In this document: positions 3,106 to 64,000 of the stretch, piece after piece
How the letters are laid out: each line of letters starts with the position of its first letter
How positions within the stretch are numbered: position 1 is the stretch's first letter
From: Rhodosorus marinus CCMP1338
Taxonomy: Eukaryota > Plantae > Rhodophyta
DNA: 64,000 nucleotides
Assembly (NCBI GenBank): GCA_029953675.1
Contig: JAMWBK010000004.1
Location: 372,001 to 436,000 of the forward strand
Reading direction: 5' to 3'
Made by a program: the position numbers and the translations under genes
Notes under the pieces: model-generated
Told to the model about the DNA's origin: nothing
The model's database searches: none
The model's input: only the letters and a program-made list of their open reading frames with translations

Positions 3106-4729
3106 CTAATCGTCACTTGCTGTGTCTGTGCTCATGAAGTGCACCGGGATATCGGAACATGCTGCCTCGAAAGCTTGCTCAGCATCCATCTCTCCTAACA
3201 GCTGCAGAAAGGGGATCATTTTCAAGGCAGTTTCATGCCATTCCTGCTCCGGGTCAGAAGTTGGCACAATCCCAGCACCAGCATAAACGATCATACGCTG
3301 TCCAACGAACAATGCTGACCTTATGGAAACGCAAAATTCGCTACTGTTCTCCCCTACATAACCAAATGGACCAGAGTACAGCCCCCTGAAATGAAGGTAA
3401 ATGAAAGCGCTTCACAGTGAGAAAGCCGCATGGGTCATCCACACGACTGGGCCTGTTGACCACTTCCAAATCAGCCTACCTGTCGAATGGCTCCAAGTCT
3501 GACAGGCTCGACTTGGCAACCGACGTCGGAAGTCCGCACACAGCGGGAGTTGGATTCATCGCTTGCAGTAGTCTCGTTGCGTTGTCCAGCAGGCTCCTTT
3601 CCGTTAGTGAAGCGGAGAGTTTGGTGCGCAGATGAACGAGGTGCGGGAGGTGGACGATATCGTGAGTCCCATCCACAGATCTAGCTCCACACTGCTTGAG
3701 CGACGAAATTATGTGCTGCGTCACCAGACCCTGTTCGTATCGATCCTTCTTCGACGACAGAATATATTCCACCGCCTCTTTTCTGTTCCCGTCCACCGCG
3801 CACGTTCCTGCCAGAGACTCCGTCAATACCTCGAAGCTTTCAAGATAGAACAATTGCTCCGGTGAACAACCCAGAAACACCTTATCCTTCATCGGCTGGA
3901 GACCGAAGAGGAATCCGTTTGGGGTAAGCTCATGGAGTAGCGGAAGCAAGCTAAAGGGGTCTGGAGGGGTCCTTTCGCACTCAAAGTTGAAAGTCCTCGC
4001 CAAAACAATCTTTGAACTCTCGCCGGCTTGGAACTTGTCCTTTATCGATTTGATCGAACGAGCCCAATCCCCTGACTTGCTCCCCTGGCTCTGATGAGAC
4101 AGTGGAGCATTCCATGAAACCAAATCATCGGCGTGCCCAGTGATCAGCTGTCGTAGCGTCCCCTCTGAATGCTCTCTCCATCGACTTTGAGACCGGTCCA
4201 CATTTAGCACAAGAACACCCCCTTCCCTATACTCAACCACGGGCACGAAAACCAGCCCATCTGCTCCAAAATCTTCCCATTCAGAACCTGCGGGCCGCTC
4301 CGAATCGAACTTACCAGCCACGTACACTCTAAGACCCTTACACAACTCCCCGACCTTGGACAGACTATCCAAGCTTTCTCGTTTCCACGCGAATCCAAGA
4401 CCCCCGACCTCGACTCCGCCTTCGCGAGATCGGTAGTAAAACCTCTCCTGACAACATGACCCTAGTCTCCTCACAAAATCGAGAATAGACTGAGGTCCCG
4501 ACTCGCTAACCTCGACCTCTAGCCGAAGCCAGCCGGAATTTCCCCTGCACCCTCGGAGTCCATCCAATAGTTTCCGCAGGCCCTCGTTTACCCCGCAAAC
4601 ACCCCCAATTCGCTGCACGACGTCCTCTCCATCACCGACTTCTACCTCTGCGCCTCCCATCCCATTACACATCAAGCCGCCCTGAGGTCCTCTACCAACA
4701 ACCACCCCGCCAACCTCACCAATACTCAT
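3106..4729 (-). CDS. menF: Isochorismate synthase (MenF-like), stand-alone, 2 exons
   Basis: Motifs KIVLAR, FLGCSPEQLF, ESLAGT, KDRYEQ and NPTPAVCGLP are in exon 1. After an intron (3479-3386) it reads DRGLYSGPFGY..EFCVSIRSAL..YAGAGIV..S.PEQEW.ET.LK. The true start is uncertain, and an upstream exon is possible. Confidence 0.9.
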
Positions 4730-48043: not shown

Positions 48044-51000
48044 CTCCCCCTGTAGAGTCTCGATCTACAATGCCCAGCCCGGACCTCAATATCTCCGTCC
48101 TCTCCTTCGTCAGAGGCTTGGTCAACAGGTCAGCCACCATCTCGTCGGTTCAGCTGTACCTCTTCGGACGCACACCTCTCGCGTGCGTACTGAAGTTTGA
48201 CAGATACGTGGCGCGACATCCTGCTATCCCCGGATGTCGCCCACCGCAGACACGACGTGTTCTCCGTGTATGCAACTAAGGACATACTCACGTCCCTGCC
48301 AGTCTCGACGATGAACTCCTGCACCCACCTCTGGGTCGTCATCATGTCCCCCAGCGCCTGGTACTCCGCTTCCGCCGTCGATTGGGCCACCGACCCTTGC
48401 TTCCATGATCGGTAAGCCACTGACGCTTCATCGACTGTCACCGACAAACTTAAGTACTCCTACTGTCTTCGTGACTGGCCCAGCTCGCATCAGAGTATCC
48501 GGTCACTTGATATCTGATTTGTCTCTGCTAACCATCGTCCGAAGAGTTACCAATAGCCGGATCCGTTTTTGATTTACCACCCAATTTCATTACTTTTCGC
48601 TGCATTCCCGCCAAATATATATTAGCAGGATCCGCCGCGGTTTTTCGAAATCTCCGAGTCGATAATCTGCCTTTTTTCGCGCGATCAAGCCGACTGCATA
48701 ACTTATATCAGGTCGCGTTCTAGTGCTTAAGTAGATCCGGTTAGCTCCTGAAACGGTGATGAGGTCATTTCCATCCAAGTCTCTTTCGTAGAGGGTGCGA
48801 TGGAGATTGGTGCGGATAAGGGACGGCATCCCTTCAATCCGTACGCGAGGGTAAGTTTGCGAATATAATCTGCCTGCGAGAGGTAGATTTCTCTTTTCCT
48901 CGGGTCTCGCTCTATGCTCACACCGAGGAAATCTCGTGCCGCTCCTAGATGTTTGATGTCGTACAGGTTTGACAAACATCTTCTTCGTTATCTCAACGTC
49001 AGCCCGGCTCCCAACGATAAGCATATCATCTAAGTAGACCGCGATGATGCACTTCTCCTTCCCGTACACGCAGCTTTCTGTTTTCAGCTGCTGAAAACCT
49101 TGCGCAAGGAGATCGTTGCTTAGTTTCCGGTGCCACTCTCTTCCCGCTTGTTTTAGGCCGTACAAGCTCTTCCGGAGGCGGCAGACGTGCTCCGCCTTTC
49201 CCGGTTCCTCCATGGCGCGGGGCTGCGTCATGTAGATCTCTTCCTGCAGTCTCGCAATCAGGTACGCAGTCTTCACATCAGCCTGCTCCACTTCGAGATC
49301 TTCCGTCGCTGCTATGATCAGGAGTACTCGAACGCTGGCGAACTCCACCGTTTGCGGGAAGACCTCCTCGTAGTCAATTTCATATCTCTGGGCAAATCCT
49401 CGAGCTACGAGTCGCGCCTTGAACCGTTGAACTGATCCATCTGCATTTTTCTTGACTAGTCCGCTACGAGCATGAGGATTCCTGTACTGGACCTGCTATC
49501 CAGTTTACCCTGTTTTCCCGGTTCGTACCGCTTGTATGTGATCTCACACCCAAACAGATATGCGTCTCCCAGCTCCATGTTGGTGCCCCTATCCGTCTCG
49601 TCTGGACATTTCCCTTTCAGGAACTTCCGTGGGGTTCGATTGATGCTGGCGACGACTACCGGTAGTGCTTCCAGCATTTGTCGTCCGTCACTCCGCTGTC
49701 GAACGTGGTGGCACGCAGTGTTTCTGAGACTGTTCTCACCATTCGCTCCGCTATCCCGTTGCTGGAGGGAGTATACGGGGCGCTCGGGCCCCACGTGATA
49801 CCCAGGTCACGTAGTAAGGGTTTCATGCTACTATACTCAAGTGCGTTGTCACTTTTGAGTCTCCGTTAGATTTGCCACATGTTGCGTTTTCATTACCATG
49901 ACAAGCTCCCTAAAGGCTGCATCACTTGGACTTCTTTGTTCAAGGGCATGCGCTCCCAGCATCCCTGTTGCCTCATCCACGAACTCCTGTATATTTCTCT
50001 CCATGTCTTCCAGCACGGAACCCGTCCGGCGATGTCAGTATGTATGCACTCGCCGAACGTCTCTGCCTCCCTGAGAGGTCCACTTCCGCCCATCGCGGTC
50101 ATCTTTGCTTTCTCGCAGCTGGAGCATTCGAACTTGTCAGGTACTTTGTCGCTCACGCGGATAACACTGTCCTTTTCTAGTTGTTTCATAGCTACAGCAC
50201 CCGGATGTCCGAGCCTCCTGTGCCATCCCACGGCATCCGTATCTTCGTTGTTACGGACTACTGCTGCCGCTGCTGTCTGAGCTCTGCTGTTGCCGCTAAT
50301 CTCCAAGTCAGTATAAAGGAGACCAGACTTTGCAATAGCTTTAATCACTTCCCTACCGTCCTTTTCTACGACTAATGTCTTTGCATCTAAGGATCTAATG
50401 GAAAAACCGTTTTCCATTAATCTACTAAGACTGACTACATTCAATGAGCCGCCTGGAAGGTAGATAGTGTCTTCAGCGACAACATATCTCCTTTTCGCGT
50501 CTTCAGCTAGACCGCACCCATCTTGCCGAGAGTCTTCGTTGTCCCGTCCCCGAATGTGACGTCAATGTCAACCATCCTTGTGGGGCCCGAGAATGCACTC
50601 TCCGAGGTGCATATGTGGTCCGTTGCTCCAGAGTCCAGCAAGAACCTCGCCGGAGCTCTGACCGCCGTCATTCCCGCATGGAATCTTCGCGTTTCCGGCC
50701 TGTTTTCCTCCTTGTCCTGCTCCTCAGGACAGTTGGCTCGGATGTGTCCGGGTTTCTTGCACCTGTAACACAGAAATCCCCTGGGGATCTTCTTCTTCTT
50801 CTTCTGCACCGTTGCGGCGTGGTGCGTGCTGGAATCTGTTTTGGACTTGATTTGCTTGGAACCTCGAAGTCGGTCCAGCTCCTCGAAGTCGTTACAGAAA
50901 CCTGTCCAGCCTAGAGTTTTGTCGTTCGCAGGATAGAACAGGAACTTCGCATACTCGTCGCCCCACACCTCCAAAATCTTAAGAAGGACCCGACGTTTTT

Positions 51001-51551
51001 CTTCATCCGTGGGCGCCACGCCCGTTATCTCCCTGATCTCTGCAAACTGGTTTTGTAGCCAGTTCACCAGAGAGCGTGGCGACTCGTTGGTGTGCATCTC
51101 GCGCCGATACCTTGCCCCACACGCTGTCAGCCGTCTCTCCGGAGGAGGGCTCATACCTAGCCCGAAGCGCCGCCCATACCTGCTCTGGCGCTGCCTCTCT
51201 CGAAGAGGCGAAGGCAGTGTCCAGCGCCGGCCCATCCAGCACTCTGGAGAACACCGCAGGGACATACTGTCTCTCCGCTTCCGTCGCGTCTATCGGGTTG
51301 TCGATTACATCCCTAAGACCTTTGACGGTCAGGTAGCACTCTACTTGGTGTCTCCAATTCCGGAAGGATCGGAACGAATCCTGATCCCCGGTGAATACTG
51401 ACGGTAGCGGGAAATCCTTCAAGCGTCCGTCATGTTCTGCAACACTCCCCCTCGTCCTGGCCGCCATTCCTGAGGCAACACCACACACAATCCCTATTCC
51501 CGTAAAAACGCACGAGCGGTTCTTACAAAATCGCACAAAGCGAAGAGAGCA

Positions 51552-59002: not shown

Positions 59003-59939
59003 CCTTCCGGGCATCCGTCAGCCCCTAAGTGTTCCTCATAGATCTTCAGCGAACCAACAAAACTCAGAGCTAATAGACCTCAAGGACCATTCCCACTGCT
59101 CTCAAAGAATCGACCAAAGTCTAGCTAACCACCAGCCCAGCTAATCAGGTCCAGGGTCCTCATCCCAAATGTCCTTTAACATTAACCAGTCTCGCATCCG
59201 GAAGCACTCTACTCCAGGTTCGCAAGAGCATCATACTAAATCATCATTTATGGAAGAACCCAACCGATTCCGTGAAAGTGCGGGACGGGAAGCGATCCGT
59301 TTGCTGTTCTCGTAAGGACTACTACAGCATATAAATAGAACGGGTCACGCAGAAAAGCGACATGCCGTTTTAAGTCCGATCTCCACAGCTGGAATCAAAA
59401 GTGAGATTCTAACTGGCAAGGCCTCCCACCATAACCAGGGGTTGTGGATGACGAGCCGGTTCGTCATTTGCACAGATGAACTTATTAGACTGTTAGCTTC
59501 TTTGAGTCTAACTCTCTGGCGCTGTAATGCAAACCTTAGTTCTGGAGTAGCTGCTCTCTGCGCCCTTCCCAGTGCACCTTAACAGGCCCCGTTTAAAACT
59601 GATCTGATTCATGAGCTTTTGAGATATTGCTTACTGTAGAACGTAAACACATAGCATAACACATTAGGGGGTCCCTAGTACCTGGATACACTCCTCATTT
59701 TCTGTTTATAGCCTCCATTCAGGAACCCTACCACGAGGAGTACACTAAAATGAGCTAAAAGTGTATTAAAAAGAGCATTGTGTCAGTGCGAGTCCTGCAA
59801 ACTGGGAAGCTACCTCCCCCCCGGGATGAGTCAAGGGAAGAACGTTCAAGGGGTCTCCTAGGTCAGAAACAGGGTACAGCGGCTTTTTATGGTATATTGA
59901 GTACCAAAATGTGCGCTGAGCGGTACCCGACCGCTCGCG

Positions 59940-60212
59940 GTGGGGAGGCCTTAGTCTACCTGGATGACCTCGTGGTCACCTGTGAGGATAGCCGCCGTAC
60001 GACGTACGTTGATCTTGCTGCTCCTAACCCTCAGACTAGCCGCTATTTGCCCGCTGCGGGAGAGCGCCGTGGATTTGACGCTGAGACGTCGCAAAGAGTT
60101 GAAATATGCGGGGGCCTTGTCTTCCCCAGGCATTCGTGCTTCCGCTCTAGCTCATCGCCTGGTATCTCTGATCATTGAGTGCTTTGGGTTTATGGATTCC
60201 GTTGGCGAATAA
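59940..60212 (+). mobile_element. Another decayed RLE-domain relic of the CRE-like non-LTR family
   Basis: DLVVTCEDSRRTTYVDL..RYLPAAGERRG, then a frameshift, then KELKYAG..ASAL..LIIECFGFMDSV. This is colinear with the relic near 14 kb. Confidence 0.65.
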
Positions 60213-61706
60213 AAAGGGTTGTGAACGATCGACGAAGTCAAGAAAAGAGCCTTGAACGGTCGAACAGGTCAAGAAGGGGCTAAGATAGTAGTAACTGCTT
60301 GTGCTTTCCACATTTTTGCCTCTCGAATGTGCTTCCACAAGTTGTTAGCAAACAGATATTAACTCCTGAGTAGCAGGCCTGGCTGTAATGGACCGGATTT
60401 CCGAGTGGCAACATATACGCGCAACAGGTACAAGGTGTTGAAAGTTTTCAAGCTGACTGAAGCTATGAGCGATCTATTATATTATCGGGAGGCGATGTTT
60501 TCGCCCTTGTCCCGTTCGATTGTGAGGCAGTTGGAAGGCTGGACTGGCAGCAAAAGGTGGCCTTCTTGTGGAAGTTGCTCTGGCGTTTCGTTTCCGCGAT
60601 TCGTTTTCATAGTCCTCTTTCCCTTCGAGTCTAGTTAGCTACATCATCATCATCCGTTCACTACCCTGTTGGGTCTGCTCCTTTCGTTGCAACTTGTTTT
60701 TTTAGCGCCACAGTCTGTGTCGCCAGAACTAGGGAAAGGTTTGCTTCAACTGTGTACTGGCAGCTACGAGTGGAGGAGGCAGACATGCCGAACAAGCGCT
60801 CATCCTCTTGGAAGATAGCACTTGTCAGCAGTCGAATGACTCAGAACGATGTGCATCAGCTGGCGCGACCAAGTTTGGATGAGACTCATGCTGTGATCCG
60901 ACATTACGCCAGTCTTCCGGTGGGCTACATCGAACCTCTGCTATTATTAAGGAAAATGAGGGACGGGATTGTGTATTGTGTGTTGTAGTGGGGGCTAACA
61001 GCTAACATTTGGCGTGTAGCTTGGATAGTGGGAATAGGGTTGTGCGTGAAATGAATTGCCCGCGCTATGTAGAATATAAAAAAATTCCCTGAACCGGGGA
61101 TGGACGTGAGGGTTTTTTTTGTTGGCTGAGTTTGGCGCGACTGAGTTTGTTCGCGATCTTGGTGTGGGCCGCCATCTTTCTGCGGCTGTTCCTCGCCTTT
61201 CCCGGCGTCTCCGGGTCGCCCGCGAAGGGGTTTAGGGTGGTTTTGGTCTGGGAAGGTGGTCCCGGTAGGGGATTGGTTTAATTTTGGTGTTGGTGTTTTG
61301 AGCGGCGATATTTCGGTCATCGGCGGTGCTTGTGGAGTACACCTGAGCAAACTCAACCCGGCGTCCCTCTGAGTCTCCGCTTCAGATCGGTTCGTCAACT
61401 GCCTCTCCGCAGATTGCTCGCGCTGTTGCTGCTGCTGCTGAAGCCAACCGCCTCGCGGAGCTGACTTCCGCGCTCACTGCTTTTGCCGATGCCCCGTGTC
61501 CCGGCGCGACGACGGCGGCCGCGGATGTCCCACATGCGCGTGTCCCATCTGGGACAACTGCTGTCGAGACAGCTGTCCATTAGACAGCTGTCCTCCCGAA
61601 TCGATCTCCTGATACGTCTCAACTATCCACCGGGCGATGAGACCACTTGATACGTCTCAACTATCCACCGGGTTGACGTCTCCAATTATTCCAGAATTCA
61701 GGTTTT

Positions 61707-62184
61707 CTCGACTCTCTGATGATGACGACGATTATAAAATTACCCTGGCGGAAGGGTACTTAACCGGTGATGCGTCTTACTGGTGGTGCTTGATTCCCGA
61801 CGACCAAAAACCTACTACGTTTGAAGGTTTTGAGATTCTGCTGAAATCTCAATTCTATCCAGCGGACACGAAGATCAGAGCCAAATAACGACTTGCGCGA
61901 GCCACCCAGCGCGCGACAGTCGCGTCGTATATGGCATATTTCAACCAATGCCTTATACAAGTGGGAGAAATCTCTGATTCAGAGAAATTTGACCGATTTG
62001 TGGAGGGTCTTAAACCAGATATCAAACGGTATATATACATCCAAGATGTGACTACGTTCGAGGATGCCCAGTCTCTGGGCCTAAAAATCGAAGGAGCTGA
62101 CCACGCGAGTCAGGGGCTTCGACGGGATCCGCAAGACCAGCGACACCGTAAACCAGAGAGCCAAATAAACCCGATACCACGGGG
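61707..62184 (+). repeat. Inverted copy of gag segment 62748-63225
   Basis: 478 bp with 6 substitutions, compared base by base. Confidence 0.97.
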
Positions 62185-62569
62185 TTCAACATCAGCAGCT
62201 GATTTGGTAGGTCGAATCTTGCTTGATAGTAGTTGAGAAAATCTCTTCCCAAATACCCTGGGCTTGTGGCGTCTTCCACAACGTAAGGTTGCCAGTCGAA
62301 GCTGTGACCGCCCAGTTGTAAGGTTACGTTGGCTTCGCCCAAGATTTATATGGATGTGCCCGGGGAGGCCGTGTCCAATTTCCCGTGTTCAGTCGGAATT
62401 ATTGGGGTGGCGTCCGGTCTTCCTCTCAGTACGGAGTGGCTGCTACCTGTATCGACGAGCAGGGAAATCCTCTTGCCGTTGACCAGCCCTTCCACGGTCA
62501 TGTCTTCCCTCATCGGAACCGGGGCGCCTTTATCAGCAACAGTATCGGCACCTCCTACTGCTGCTCCTC
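62185..62569 (-). pseudogene. Retroviral-type aspartic protease in the -1 frame relative to gag, with one in-frame stop and truncation at the inversion junction
   Basis: VEGLVNGKRISLLVDTGSSHSV...*...GYLGRDFL. Confidence 0.85.
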
Positions 62570-63337
62570 TTTTAACTCTGAAAACGAAGGGGGTGCCGAT
62601 TTTGACACAGTTGGGTCCCGACCCGGGTTATTCCAACAGATTCTTTGGGTATGTCCTTTCTTGCCGCAGAAATTGCAAATGACGTTGACATATTTCCCGT
62701 TGCGTAGCTCCTGGGTTTTGGGTTGGTACGAAAGGCCGGATCTTGTTCCCCGTGGTATCAGGTTTATTTGGCTCTCTGGTTTACGGTGTCGCTGGTCTTG
62801 CGGATCCCGTCGAAGCCCCTGACTCGCGTGGTCAGCTCCTTCGATTTTTAGGCCCAGAGACTGGGCATCCTCGAACGTAGTCACATCTTGGATATATATA
62901 TACCGTTTGATATCTGGTTTAAGACCCTCCACAAATCGGTCAAATTTCTCTGAATCAGAGATTTCTCCCACTTGTATAAGGCATTGGTTGAAATATGCCG
63001 TATACGACGCGACTGTCGCGCGCTGGGTGGCTCGCGCAAGTCGTTGTTTGGCTCTGATCTTCGTGTCCGCTGGATAGAATTGAGATTTCAGCAGAATCTC
63101 AAAACCTTCAAACGTAGTAGGTTTTTGGTCGTCGGGAATCAAGCACCACCAGTAAGACGCGTCACCGGTTAAGTACCCTTCCACCAGGGTAATTTTATAA
63201 TCGTCGTCATCATCAGAGAGTCGAGCTAACTTGAAGTATGTTCTCAGGTTGTTCAAGAAGGTGCTTATGAGCAACGCGTCCCTTCTTCCGTCGTAAGCCT
63301 TCGGCTGCGGGGCTTGGATTTTGATCAATGCGGCCAT
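62555..63337 (-). CDS. gag: Intact 260-aa retrotransposon Gag with a CCHC knuckle
   Basis: Uninterrupted ORF with PKAYDGRRD, YLTGDASYWW, FVEGLKPDI and CNFCGKKGHTQRIC. Confidence 0.92.
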   Translation of the reverse strand: MAALIKIQAPQPKAYDGRRDALLISTFLNNLRTYFKLARLSDDDDDYKITLVEGYLTGDASYWWCLIPDDQKPTTFEGFEILLKSQFYPADTKIRAKQRLARATQRATVASYTAYFNQCLIQVGEISDSEKFDRFVEGLKPDIKRYIYIQDVTTFEDAQSLGLKIEGADHASQGLRRDPQDQRHRKPESQINLIPRGTRSGLSYQPKTQELRNGKYVNVICNFCGKKGHTQRICWNNPGRDPTVSKSAPPSFSELKEEQQ

Positions 63338-63528
63338 TCTGGTTCTGTCAGGTTTTCTGGTTCAGGGTTCTGGTTCTATACGGGTTCTCGTGGTTCACTG
63401 GTTATATAGGATTCCTCTGGTTCAACTGGTATAGGATTCCTCTGGTTCTTTTCTGGTTCTAGTAGTACTGGGCTCACTTTTCAGGTTCGCATAATGGTTC
63501 CTCAATCGCAACTTGCGATGAGACCACT

Positions 63529-63840
63529 TGATACGTCTCAACTATCAACCGGGTTGACGTCTCCAATTATTCCAGAATTCAGGTTTACTTCCCCCTAATT
63601 ACTCCCTAATTAGGGAATATATCCCAATTCTAACCTTTTGCTATTAATTCTGGTTCTCTCCCCTCCTCCTTCTCCAGCGAACCTTAGTGGCATCGGATTT
63701 TCCATCGTATTTATACTCTTGCTTCATCGGGACGTGCAATAACCATTGGGACCAAACTGGTGTTGCACCTCCATAGATTCTGGCACAGCCCGAGCATAAT
63801 TTTGCATAGCCGGACGTTGCTGGAAGGTGCAGACGTCACA
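63529..63840 (-). repeat. Gypsy 5' LTR (312 bp) with a TATA-like motif
   Basis: Imperfect terminal inverted repeats, TATAAATA on the minus strand near 63710, and adjacency to both the PBS and the TSD. Confidence 0.85.
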
Positions 63841-63843
63841 TCT

Positions 63844-64000
63844 CCTCCTGCAGACTCTGATGATGATACCGACTCTTCTGTGTTGATGATGTAGACTCTG
63901 ATGATCAAACTCTTCTGTGTCTACTCTCTTCTGTGTTGATGATGCAGACTCTGATGATCAGACTCTTCTGTGTCTGCATCATCATCAGAGTCTGCAAGAG
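63844..64000. repeat. Short-unit repeat (GACTCTGATGAT and CTCTTCTGTGT) closed by an inverted copy
   Basis: CCTGCAGACTCTGATGATGAT near 63845 is the near reverse complement of ATCATCATCAGAGTCTGCAAG at the window end, with direct repeats in between. Confidence 0.8.

Follow-up and report, generated by a model that had tools for sequence, protein, structure and literature searches.

The unit at positions 61610-63840 of the window, which is the whole 64,000-nucleotide stretch of Rhodosorus marinus CCMP1338 DNA analyzed here, is probably a genuine but defective, decaying copy of a Ty3/gypsy-type retrotransposon in the nuclear genome, single in the window, which arose as an accidental by-product and serves at most as an incidental source of gag siRNAs. 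In this copy, all that would follow the protease, namely the RT, RNase H and integrase regions together with the PPT and the greater part of the 3′ LTR, has been swapped for inverted gag codons 38-197 and a patchwork of U5, PBS and again U5. Signs of decay are a TAA codon in the protease frame, another TAA in the inverted gag segment (arm B) and six substitutions between the two gag arms.

The initial annotation had read the minus strand as LTR, PBS, leader, intact gag and protease, followed by antisense gag, and our analysis bore out this order (Table 1). The LTR has TG...CA termini with short terminal inverted repeats as well as a TATA box, and TATAAATA lies inside it at 63715-63708. According to the homologous transcript L001, R begins at ~63626 or farther upstream. 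The PBS was conserved in the transcripts L001, L003 and L005, and a tRNA scan for its primer returned 0 tRNA genes in the window. The perfect TCTCC target site duplication (TSD) that had been claimed around the unit was also found; its length falls within the 4-6 bp characteristic of such duplications, and a 5-bp chance match at a fixed position has a probability of ~1/1024. Because this TSD frames canonical U3 and U5 termini, we conclude that the element was inserted by integrase.

Table 1. Features of the element and its target site, in window coordinates (strand as in the window; a dot marks features without strand).
Feature	Position	Strand	Details
Left TSD, TCTCC	61605-61609	.	Identical to 63841-63845
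Terminal 25 bp of U5	61610-61634	-	Element 3′ end, ...GTATCA; 24/25 identical to 63529-63553
Junction J3	61634/5	.	1 nt of microhomology (junction alignment)
PBS copy and 2-nt spacer	61635-61647	-	PBS 11 nt, plus shared G at 61634
Second U5 copy	61648-61705	-	Last 57-58 bp of U5, oriented like the 5′ LTR
Junction J2 zone, U5 to gag	61692-61708	.	Crossover at 61706
Arm B	61707-62184	+	gag codons 38-197; repeat search, blastn, base-by-base comparison
Junction J1, protease end to antisense gag	62185-62193	.	CCC microhomology, deduced from relatives L005 and L006
Protease frame	62194-62621	-	DTGS motif; Asp_protease_2 4.8e-5; collinear with L001 and L006
gag ORF	63337-62555	-	260 aa, uninterrupted, CCHC knuckle
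Arm A	62748-63225	-	Stretch of intact gag present again in arm B
Leader	63338-63514	-	~8 GAACCAGA-like repeats
PBS TGGTCTCATCGC	63526-63515	-	Adjoins LTR after 2-nt spacer AG at 63527-63528
LTR, sole complete one	63529-63840	-	312 bp, TG...CA, TGTGACGTC...GACGTATCA on element strand
Right TSD, TCTCC	63841-63845	.	Read directly from sequence

The gag ORF, the only intact ORF of the element, matched the Pfam families Ty3_capsid (PF19259, 2.5e-12) and Retrotrans_gag (PF03732, 1.5e-10). Its full length (100%) aligned at 70% identity with an expressed gag of Rhodosorus marinus, and the sole close gag relative in the collections searched was from this species. The protease reported before is indeed present, but its frame is -1 relative to gag, ends in ...NQLLMLNP and is interrupted by an in-frame TAA at 62346-62348. 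The label 'Gypsy' stands for the Ty3-type capsid gag with its CCHC knuckle and for the aspartic protease, and it is to be read as referring to these two parts, RT, RNase H and integrase being absent from the element. Instead of a second, direct LTR, the 3′ side carries only the 57-58-bp and 25-bp fragments of U5. U3 and the 5′ part of R are missing at the element 3′ end and there is no PPT, antisense gag (...CAGAGAGTCGAG/AAAACC) standing right before the U5 fragment.

Base-by-base comparison confirmed the inverted gag repeat, with 472 of 478 positions identical between the arms and a loop of 563 bp. Since arm B is sense on the plus strand, it is antisense within the element. A repeat search of the window called somewhat wider arms (61692-62193 and 62739-63240, 502 nt, 97%), and blastn aligned 497 bp at 97.6%. 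As a correction to the initial annotation, arm B carries a nonsense TAA at 61886-61888; the ORF at 61637-61885 showed a weak match to Pfam Retrotrans_gag. The six mismatches are all C/T transitions, four of them at CpG, and amount to an arm divergence of 1.3%, or ~0.6% change per arm. Polarization with L001, at only 4 or 5 informative sites, revealed no significant strand bias. The intactness of both the gag ORF and the LTR could reflect youth, given arms diverged by 1.3%, or retention. When the LTR transcript was modelled from 63626 to 61610, the arms were predicted to pair in register at 475 of their 478 positions (MFE -1266 kcal/mol), in line with the ~480 bp of dsRNA anticipated from the arms. 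The hairpin alone reached -1145 kcal/mol versus ~-460 for shuffled sequences, and the predicted duplex contained perfect runs of up to 133 bp. According to these models, any transcript crossing the unit would form ~478 bp of near-perfect dsRNA against gag, a Dicer-type substrate.

The patchwork described at the left (3′) end was recovered as well, namely 57-58 bp of U5, a PBS copy and the last 25 bp of U5, and it comprises a direct repeat (D2) in which 61634-61708 equals 63515-63589 at 97%. At the J2 zone, donor and acceptor were identical at 12 of 17 positions (P ~1e-4), to the left of the crossover. L001 was collinear with the element from R/U5 to the protease end, and its alignment ended exactly at J1. 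All three novel joints, with the qualification given for J1 in Table 1, thus lie at microhomology, and for this reason they fit a single polymerase run with three template switches, which the position of the J2 homology would orient 5′ to 3′ along the plus strand of the window. The strand made by such a run would have the polarity of minus-strand cDNA and begin at the U5 end. The run itself may represent reverse transcription that went awry ahead of integration, or MMBIR/FoSTeS-type replication-based repair of a full-length copy afterwards. Nested or head-to-head insertion of two elements was rejected because arm B is bordered on its outer side by U5/PBS oriented like the first element and not by a leader and LTR of its own; in addition, arm B is without gag codons 1-37. 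Autointegration or a 2-LTR-circle product was rejected because no internal joint falls at an LTR terminus. The unit could be transcribed from the LTR promoter that it still has, or through read-through from outside, and the resulting hairpin would at most incidentally feed gag siRNAs into host RNAi.

No second copy of the element was found in the window by blastn, and no autonomous family copy was found there or in the collections searched. Several relatives were detected among Rhodosorus transcript contigs. L006 is collinear over gag, PR and RT, integrase not being seen in this contig, and L005 points to relatives that have an LTR-like stretch and a PBS close behind the protease, while L003 and L004 are other rearranged, transcribed relatives. 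Three of the five related contigs (L003, L004 and L005, from MMETSP strains) likewise pass from sense gag into antisense sequence of an element, a hint, unless the joins are transcript-assembly chimeras, that such products may be recurrent and not accidental. The metagenome scan yielded only a weak zinc-knuckle match (L002), and exact-protein look-ups of gag, an SDR ORF of the host and two ORFs that span junctions gave no match. Rfam produced no match near threshold on 61000-64000, nor did Pfam match the flanking ORFs at 56.4-61.4 kb. One ORF of the window was 94% identical to the isochorismate synthase of R. marinus, which, like the gag match, places the host in Rhodosorus.

It is possible to see in the same anatomy a functional silencer like Mu killer, whose LTR-driven hairpin RNA would be diced into siRNAs that silence autonomous copies in trans, a reading that specifies post-transcriptional, perhaps heritable silencing. 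The complete LTR with a TATA box, the transcription of a homologous family from the corresponding LTR position and the predicted 478-bp near-perfect duplex, with perfect runs to 133 bp, speak for it. So do the precedents of Mu killer (as cited in PMC11624286), Ac/Ds (bioRxiv 10.1101/2020.01.07.897926) and tomato EPRV (PMC9868043), and the fact that loss of DCL1/AGO1 among red algae has been reported only in Cyanidiophyceae, non-cyanidiophycean red algae being reported to keep both (PMC9812998). A literature search for RNAi in Rhodosorus gave nothing specific. We nevertheless regard a functional silencer as unlikely: there is no autonomous target copy in the window or the collections searched, the nonsense mutations and the six arm substitutions resemble neutral decay, and the CpG content bears no methylation footprint. 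The idea of such a footprint was dropped: CpG sites account for four of the six arm differences, but the observed/expected CpG ratio is 0.98 for the element and 0.91 for the window, with no depletion. The locus does contain an inverted transposon duplication of the Mu killer type (478 bp, 472 identical), and the analogy is a fair statement of how it could work. We consider, however, that the locus is not a maintained silencer but at most a candidate siRNA source, whose mode of origin, transcription and siRNA output we infer.

Packaging and mobilization in trans, which the initial annotation had suggested, are contradicted by the anatomy, since the 3′ end has neither PPT nor U3, lacks the 5′ part of R and retains only the last 57-58 nt of R-U5. 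With R starting at ~63626 or farther upstream and the 3′ end truncated, minus-strand transfer could not take place canonically, nor could the LTR promoter be regenerated in that way, by the established replication scheme of LTR retroelements. It is accordingly very unlikely that the unit is a non-autonomous gag-protease derivative, packaged and reverse-transcribed in trans, with its hairpin spread through a mobile subfamily. Its TSD, its correct U3 and U5 termini and the retention of PBS, leader and gag would suit such a derivative, as would the arrangement that L005 suggests and the rearranged, transcribed relatives L003 and L004. Yet the 478-bp intramolecular duplex would impede translation and reverse transcription, and of the features of a mobilizable TR-GAG or LARD-like element (both LTRs, PBS, PPT, multiple copies) the unit shows a single LTR and lacks the PPT, and the window contains no sibling of it. 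The intact Gag might alternatively act as a decoy that poisons particle assembly of relatives, by analogy with Ty1 p22 or Fv1-type restriction, the hairpin being irrelevant. Among the ORFs of the element only that of gag is intact, with 260 aa and full length relative to its expressed homologue, and this agrees with the proposal; on any full transcript, however, codons 38-197 would be locked in the predicted duplex, and the integrity of the ORF is expected by chance because each arm has changed by only ~0.6%. A Gag decoy is therefore highly improbable. Just as improbable is an assembly or chimeric-read artefact, with a fold-back missing from the genome. Fold-back chimeras do arise in long-read data, but here the six arm differences are all transitions instead of indel-type errors, which argues for real, aged, separate sequences and against sequencing error. 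The arms enclose a 563-bp unique loop and do not form a zero-spacer palindrome, and the published R. marinus assembly, which may be the source of the window, is long-read and chromosome-level, with a CCMP1338 genome of ~31 Mb (PMC10250338). Furthermore, a perfect TSD and correct LTR termini frame the whole unit, and there are three separate joints at microhomology; overlap-based misassembly is disfavoured because these joints connect non-homologous sequence.

Like LARD, TRIM and TR-GAG elements, the accidental by-product that we favour has no RT or integrase and keeps an LTR and PBS, with a gag ORF as in TR-GAG. Those elements have two LTRs and a PPT and form multi-copy families (cf. PMC13570524), whereas this one has a single LTR, no PPT and no known sibling. 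In maize Mu killer, for which silencing was shown by genetics and siRNAs (Slotkin, Freeling & Lisch 2005, as cited in PMC11624286), part of a transposon has likewise been duplicated naturally in inverted orientation, and the transcript is able to form a long hairpin homologous to coding or terminal sequence of the family. Mu killer originated from the DNA transposon MuDR, in contrast to the LTR retrotransposon of a red alga described here. Both arms of the latter are contained in one unit that a TSD flanks and that brings its own LTR promoter, and silencing is only a candidate function of this unit. The closest conceptual parallel is the self-inflicted origin, by alternative transposition, of Ac/Ds composite insertions, in which the element itself errs at one step of its replication or transposition and leaves inverted duplications that yield dsRNA and siRNAs (bioRxiv 10.1101/2020.01.07.897926); there, DNA transposase acts on two termini with re-replication, whereas for Rhodosorus we propose that reverse transcriptase or a repair polymerase switched templates. 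The nested EVD insertion in antisense in Arabidopsis (PMC11624286) and the endogenous pararetrovirus (EPRV) loci of tomato (PMC9868043) also provide retroelement inverted repeats that are proposed or shown to be siRNA sources. Their repeats come from two insertions or micro-scale genomic rearrangements, unlike the internal gag repeat of a single Rhodosorus element, and the EVD repeat is made of LTRs, its siRNA output being untested in that study (PMC11624286). Hairpin loci that derive from transposons are already known (Mu killer, Ac/Ds composite insertions, tomato EPRV repeats), and the Rhodosorus locus joins them by its structure.

Eukaryotic genomes commonly contain transposon copies that have been rearranged and bear inverted repeats. 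How a genome first recognizes an active retrotransposon is still debated, and derivatives with inverted repeats, themselves rare, are a proven route of recognition for DNA transposons (Mu killer, Ac/Ds). For LTR retrotransposons the hairpin route is largely hypothetical; the EVD work (PMC11624286) sought hairpins and came upon a single one, an untested case. In a unicellular red alga with a 31-Mb long-read-assembled genome, a clean gag hairpin that has its own promoter and is flanked by a TSD would be an unusually tractable natural test case, and the structure of its three-switch joints neatly records how replication went astray. The TSD-flanked unit with a minus-polarity run from U5 and the switch from sense to antisense in three of five contigs are hints of recurrent self-made hairpins. 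We think it rather improbable that error-prone strand transfer in the course of reverse transcription recurs in Rhodosorus gypsy elements and generates integrated, LTR-driven and transcribed hairpin copies, self-made, that act as the family's own RNAi trigger. If true, such hairpins would be a built-in brake on copy number, one without precedent in red algae or among LTR retrotransposons.

Part of the intact gag of this rearranged gypsy-type LTR retrotransposon copy (arm A, 62748-63225) is matched by an antisense gag copy (arm B, 61707-62184) over 478 bp, with six mismatches and 563 bp between the arms in a base-by-base comparison. The initial annotation had reported a gag inverted repeat here; direct reading and repeat scans confirmed it, and its arm coordinates proved exact. 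The scans extended the repeat to 502 nt (97%) by extension and 497 bp (97.6%) by blastn, and the few ill-matching bases thereby added at each end represent the zones of microhomology at the joints. Every one of the six arm differences is a C/T transition, and four occur at CpG sites. No further LTR or gag copy was detected by blastn in the 64-kb window. Divergence of the arms by transitions, a unique loop and three joints between non-homologous sequences, all within a framing TSD, make it very likely that the structure is genuine.

Anatomy of the rearranged gypsy-type element in window coordinates
Feature	Position	Strand	Details
LTR	63840->63529	-	312 bp, reads TGTGACGTC...GACGTATCA
TATAAATA within LTR	63715-63708	-	
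PBS TGGTCTCATCGC	63526-63515	-	2-nt spacer between LTR and PBS
Leader		-	177 nt, after PBS; many GAACCAGA-like repeats
gag ORF	63337-62555	-	260 aa, unbroken; CCHC knuckle
Protease frame	open from 62621	-	-1 frame relative to gag; DTGS motif; Asp_protease_2 match 4.8e-5
Protease end (...NQLLMLNP) to antisense gag	62193/62184	-	
U5 end	61705-61648	-	57-58 bp, beyond antisense arm
Spacer and PBS copy	61647-61634/5	-	
Last 25 bp of U5	61634-61610	-	
TCTCC, both flanks	61605-61609 and 63841-63845		direct reading

The gag ORF matched the Ty3_capsid (2.5e-12) and Retrotrans_gag (1.5e-10) profiles. Nonsense mutations are already present in the protease frame (a single in-frame TAA, 62346-62348) and in arm B (nonsense codon, 61886). 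Each 478-bp arm has taken only about three changes, few enough that chance alone would be expected to leave a 780-bp ORF intact; the uninterrupted gag is therefore no evidence of selection. In the leader (63340-63500, minus strand) we counted about eight GAACCAGA-like repeats, and similar AACC(A/G)GAAA motifs occur in the leaders of L001 and L005, two transcript contigs carrying related gag; these repeats may represent a conserved element for packaging or dimerisation. The PBS TGGTCTCATCGCAA can form a hairpin with TTGCGATTGAG, immediately 3′ of it (63500-63526, minus strand), an arrangement also found in L001 at ~100-125 (ATCGCA TGTT TGCGAT).

The most plausible reading of the element is a defective gypsy copy whose rearranged form arose by template switching. 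At the U5/PBS joint (61634/5), the PBS is connected to U5 at a point 25 nt from the U5 end, with a 1-nt overlap. The U5/gag joint connects U5, 57-58 nt from its end, to gag codon 38; donor (U5) and acceptor (gag) are identical there at 12 of 17 positions (61692-61708; binomial P ~1e-4), and these matches are located left of the 61706 crossover. At the third joint (62185-62193) the protease end meets gag codon 197 in antisense, and because the related contigs L006 and L005 read TTGAACCCAG and TTCAACCCAG there, we infer a CCC overlap with the acceptor ...TTCCCCGTGG. The location of the U5/gag homology, within the newly made 3′ end, is consistent with 5′->3′ synthesis on the plus strand of the window. 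Such a run would have started in the flank or on a primer, copied 25 nt of U5, switched back to the PBS and U5 (~70 nt), continued into 478 nt of sense gag copied from an antisense template and then antisense protease, and proceeded normally to the 5′ LTR. Because the proposed run has minus-strand cDNA polarity and starts where minus-strand synthesis starts, an origin by aberrant reverse transcription is attractive; this would have involved plus-strand strong-stop DNA from a normal co-packaged genome. Replication-based repair (MMBIR/FoSTeS type) within a formerly full-length insertion predicts the same sequence as aberrant reverse transcription.

Folding of a model transcript (63626->61610, 2017 nt) gave -1266 kcal/mol with 475 of the 478 arm positions paired in register, which supports the earlier proposal that an LTR transcript would fold into gag dsRNA. 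The hairpin alone reached -1145 kcal/mol, versus about -460 for shuffles, with perfect duplex runs of up to 133 bp. Given this predicted energy and pairing, any RNA spanning the unit would form a long dsRNA homologous to 61% of gag. Mobilisation in trans, also suggested earlier, is unlikely: the 3′ end of the element has no PPT and no U3, and its R-U5 is reduced to the last 57-58 nt, short of the full R-U5, given that the distance from the start of R to the LTR end is 98 nt or more. For the same reasons, canonical replication is not possible for an element of this sequence.

A HMMER search with gag in 1.84 billion representatives returned 3003 matches at E <= 1e-3, of which no more than five were at 1e-30 or better; these five are all short fragments of 60-80% identity and come from JGI transcript assemblies. 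The homologous transcript contig L001 runs collinear with the element from the LTR interior (~63626) to the protease, with U5, PBS, leader and gag in between, and the alignment ends exactly at the protease/antisense-gag joint. Its start places the beginning of R at ~63626 or upstream, and its homology from the LTR interior onward indicates LTR-driven transcription of a related family. L006 is collinear (gag-PR-RT). Among five Rhodosorus-type transcript contigs whose gag is related (55-73% nt identity), three pass from sense gag into antisense sequence of the element. L003 reads U5-PBS-leader-gag(1-121), then antisense RT/RNase H pieces (1371->1186); L004 reads gag(1-103), then antisense gag segments (530->444, 749->522), plus a zero-spacer palindrome; and L005 reads sense PBS-leader-gag, then antisense gag start, leader, PBS, protease and gag C-terminus, its PBS-leader-gag start forming an inverted repeat (315-432 versus 1006-1234; arms 76-90% complementary). 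Either these joins are assembly chimeras, which short-read, unstranded transcript assemblies can produce and which the L004 palindrome resembles, or they are real, and rearranged sense-antisense copies may be common and transcribed in the genus, a lead rather than a result. On the L005 minus strand (~1405-1226), the protease end (...FNP) is followed by ~55 nt and an LTR-like stretch of ~140 nt (TGACGTCC...ACGTGTCA), with TA and the PBS next; the arrangement may reflect either a deletion derivative reduced to gag and protease or tandem elements with a shared LTR.

Isochorismate synthase of Rhodosorus marinus shares 94% identity with the window ORF at 3479-4729 (minus strand), and the sole close full-length gag among 5.8 billion proteins was an R. 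marinus transcriptome protein (70% identity, 100% coverage). These similarities assign the window to the nuclear genome of a red alga of the genus Rhodosorus (Stylonematophyceae); the transcriptome strain is probably a different strain or species. A long-read assembly of R. marinus CCMP1338 has been published at chromosome level (31 Mb, 15% repeats; PMC10250338). Adjoining the TSD on the right, 63845-64000 contains nested direct and inverted repeats of CTCTGATGATGA / CTCTTCTGTG units that continue past the window end, with only sub-threshold Rfam matches. Copia-type fragments at 48590-51265 (minus strand; RVT_2 2.3e-31, zf-CCHC, Pol_BBD) are spread over separate ORFs, pointing to a degraded element. 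The ORF at 59780-60178 (plus strand), with a YLDD-like motif (ALVYLDDLVV) and no Pfam match, may be what is left of a heavily degraded RT.

Silencing triggered by transposon-derived inverted repeats is established, with examples in Mu killer (as cited in PMC11624286), Ac/Ds composite insertions (bioRxiv 10.1101/2020.01.07.897926) and tomato EPRV inverted repeats (PMC9868043). For LTR retrotransposons, silencing by inverted-repeat derivatives is mostly hypothetical; a study of EVD found one antisense nested insertion and left it without assay (PMC11624286). The initial annotation had likened the element to Mu killer. The structural part of that likeness, the inverted repeat, holds, and by analogy the element could work in the same way, its functional role being that of a candidate. 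Cyanidiophyceae are the sole red-algal group reported to have lost DCL1 and AGO1 (PMC9812998); our literature search found no paper on RNAi in Rhodosorus. CpG observed/expected is undepressed in both the element (0.98) and the window (0.91). The element joins the known kind of transposon-derived inverted repeats, in a lineage without any described case, and its candidate role would be cheap to test.
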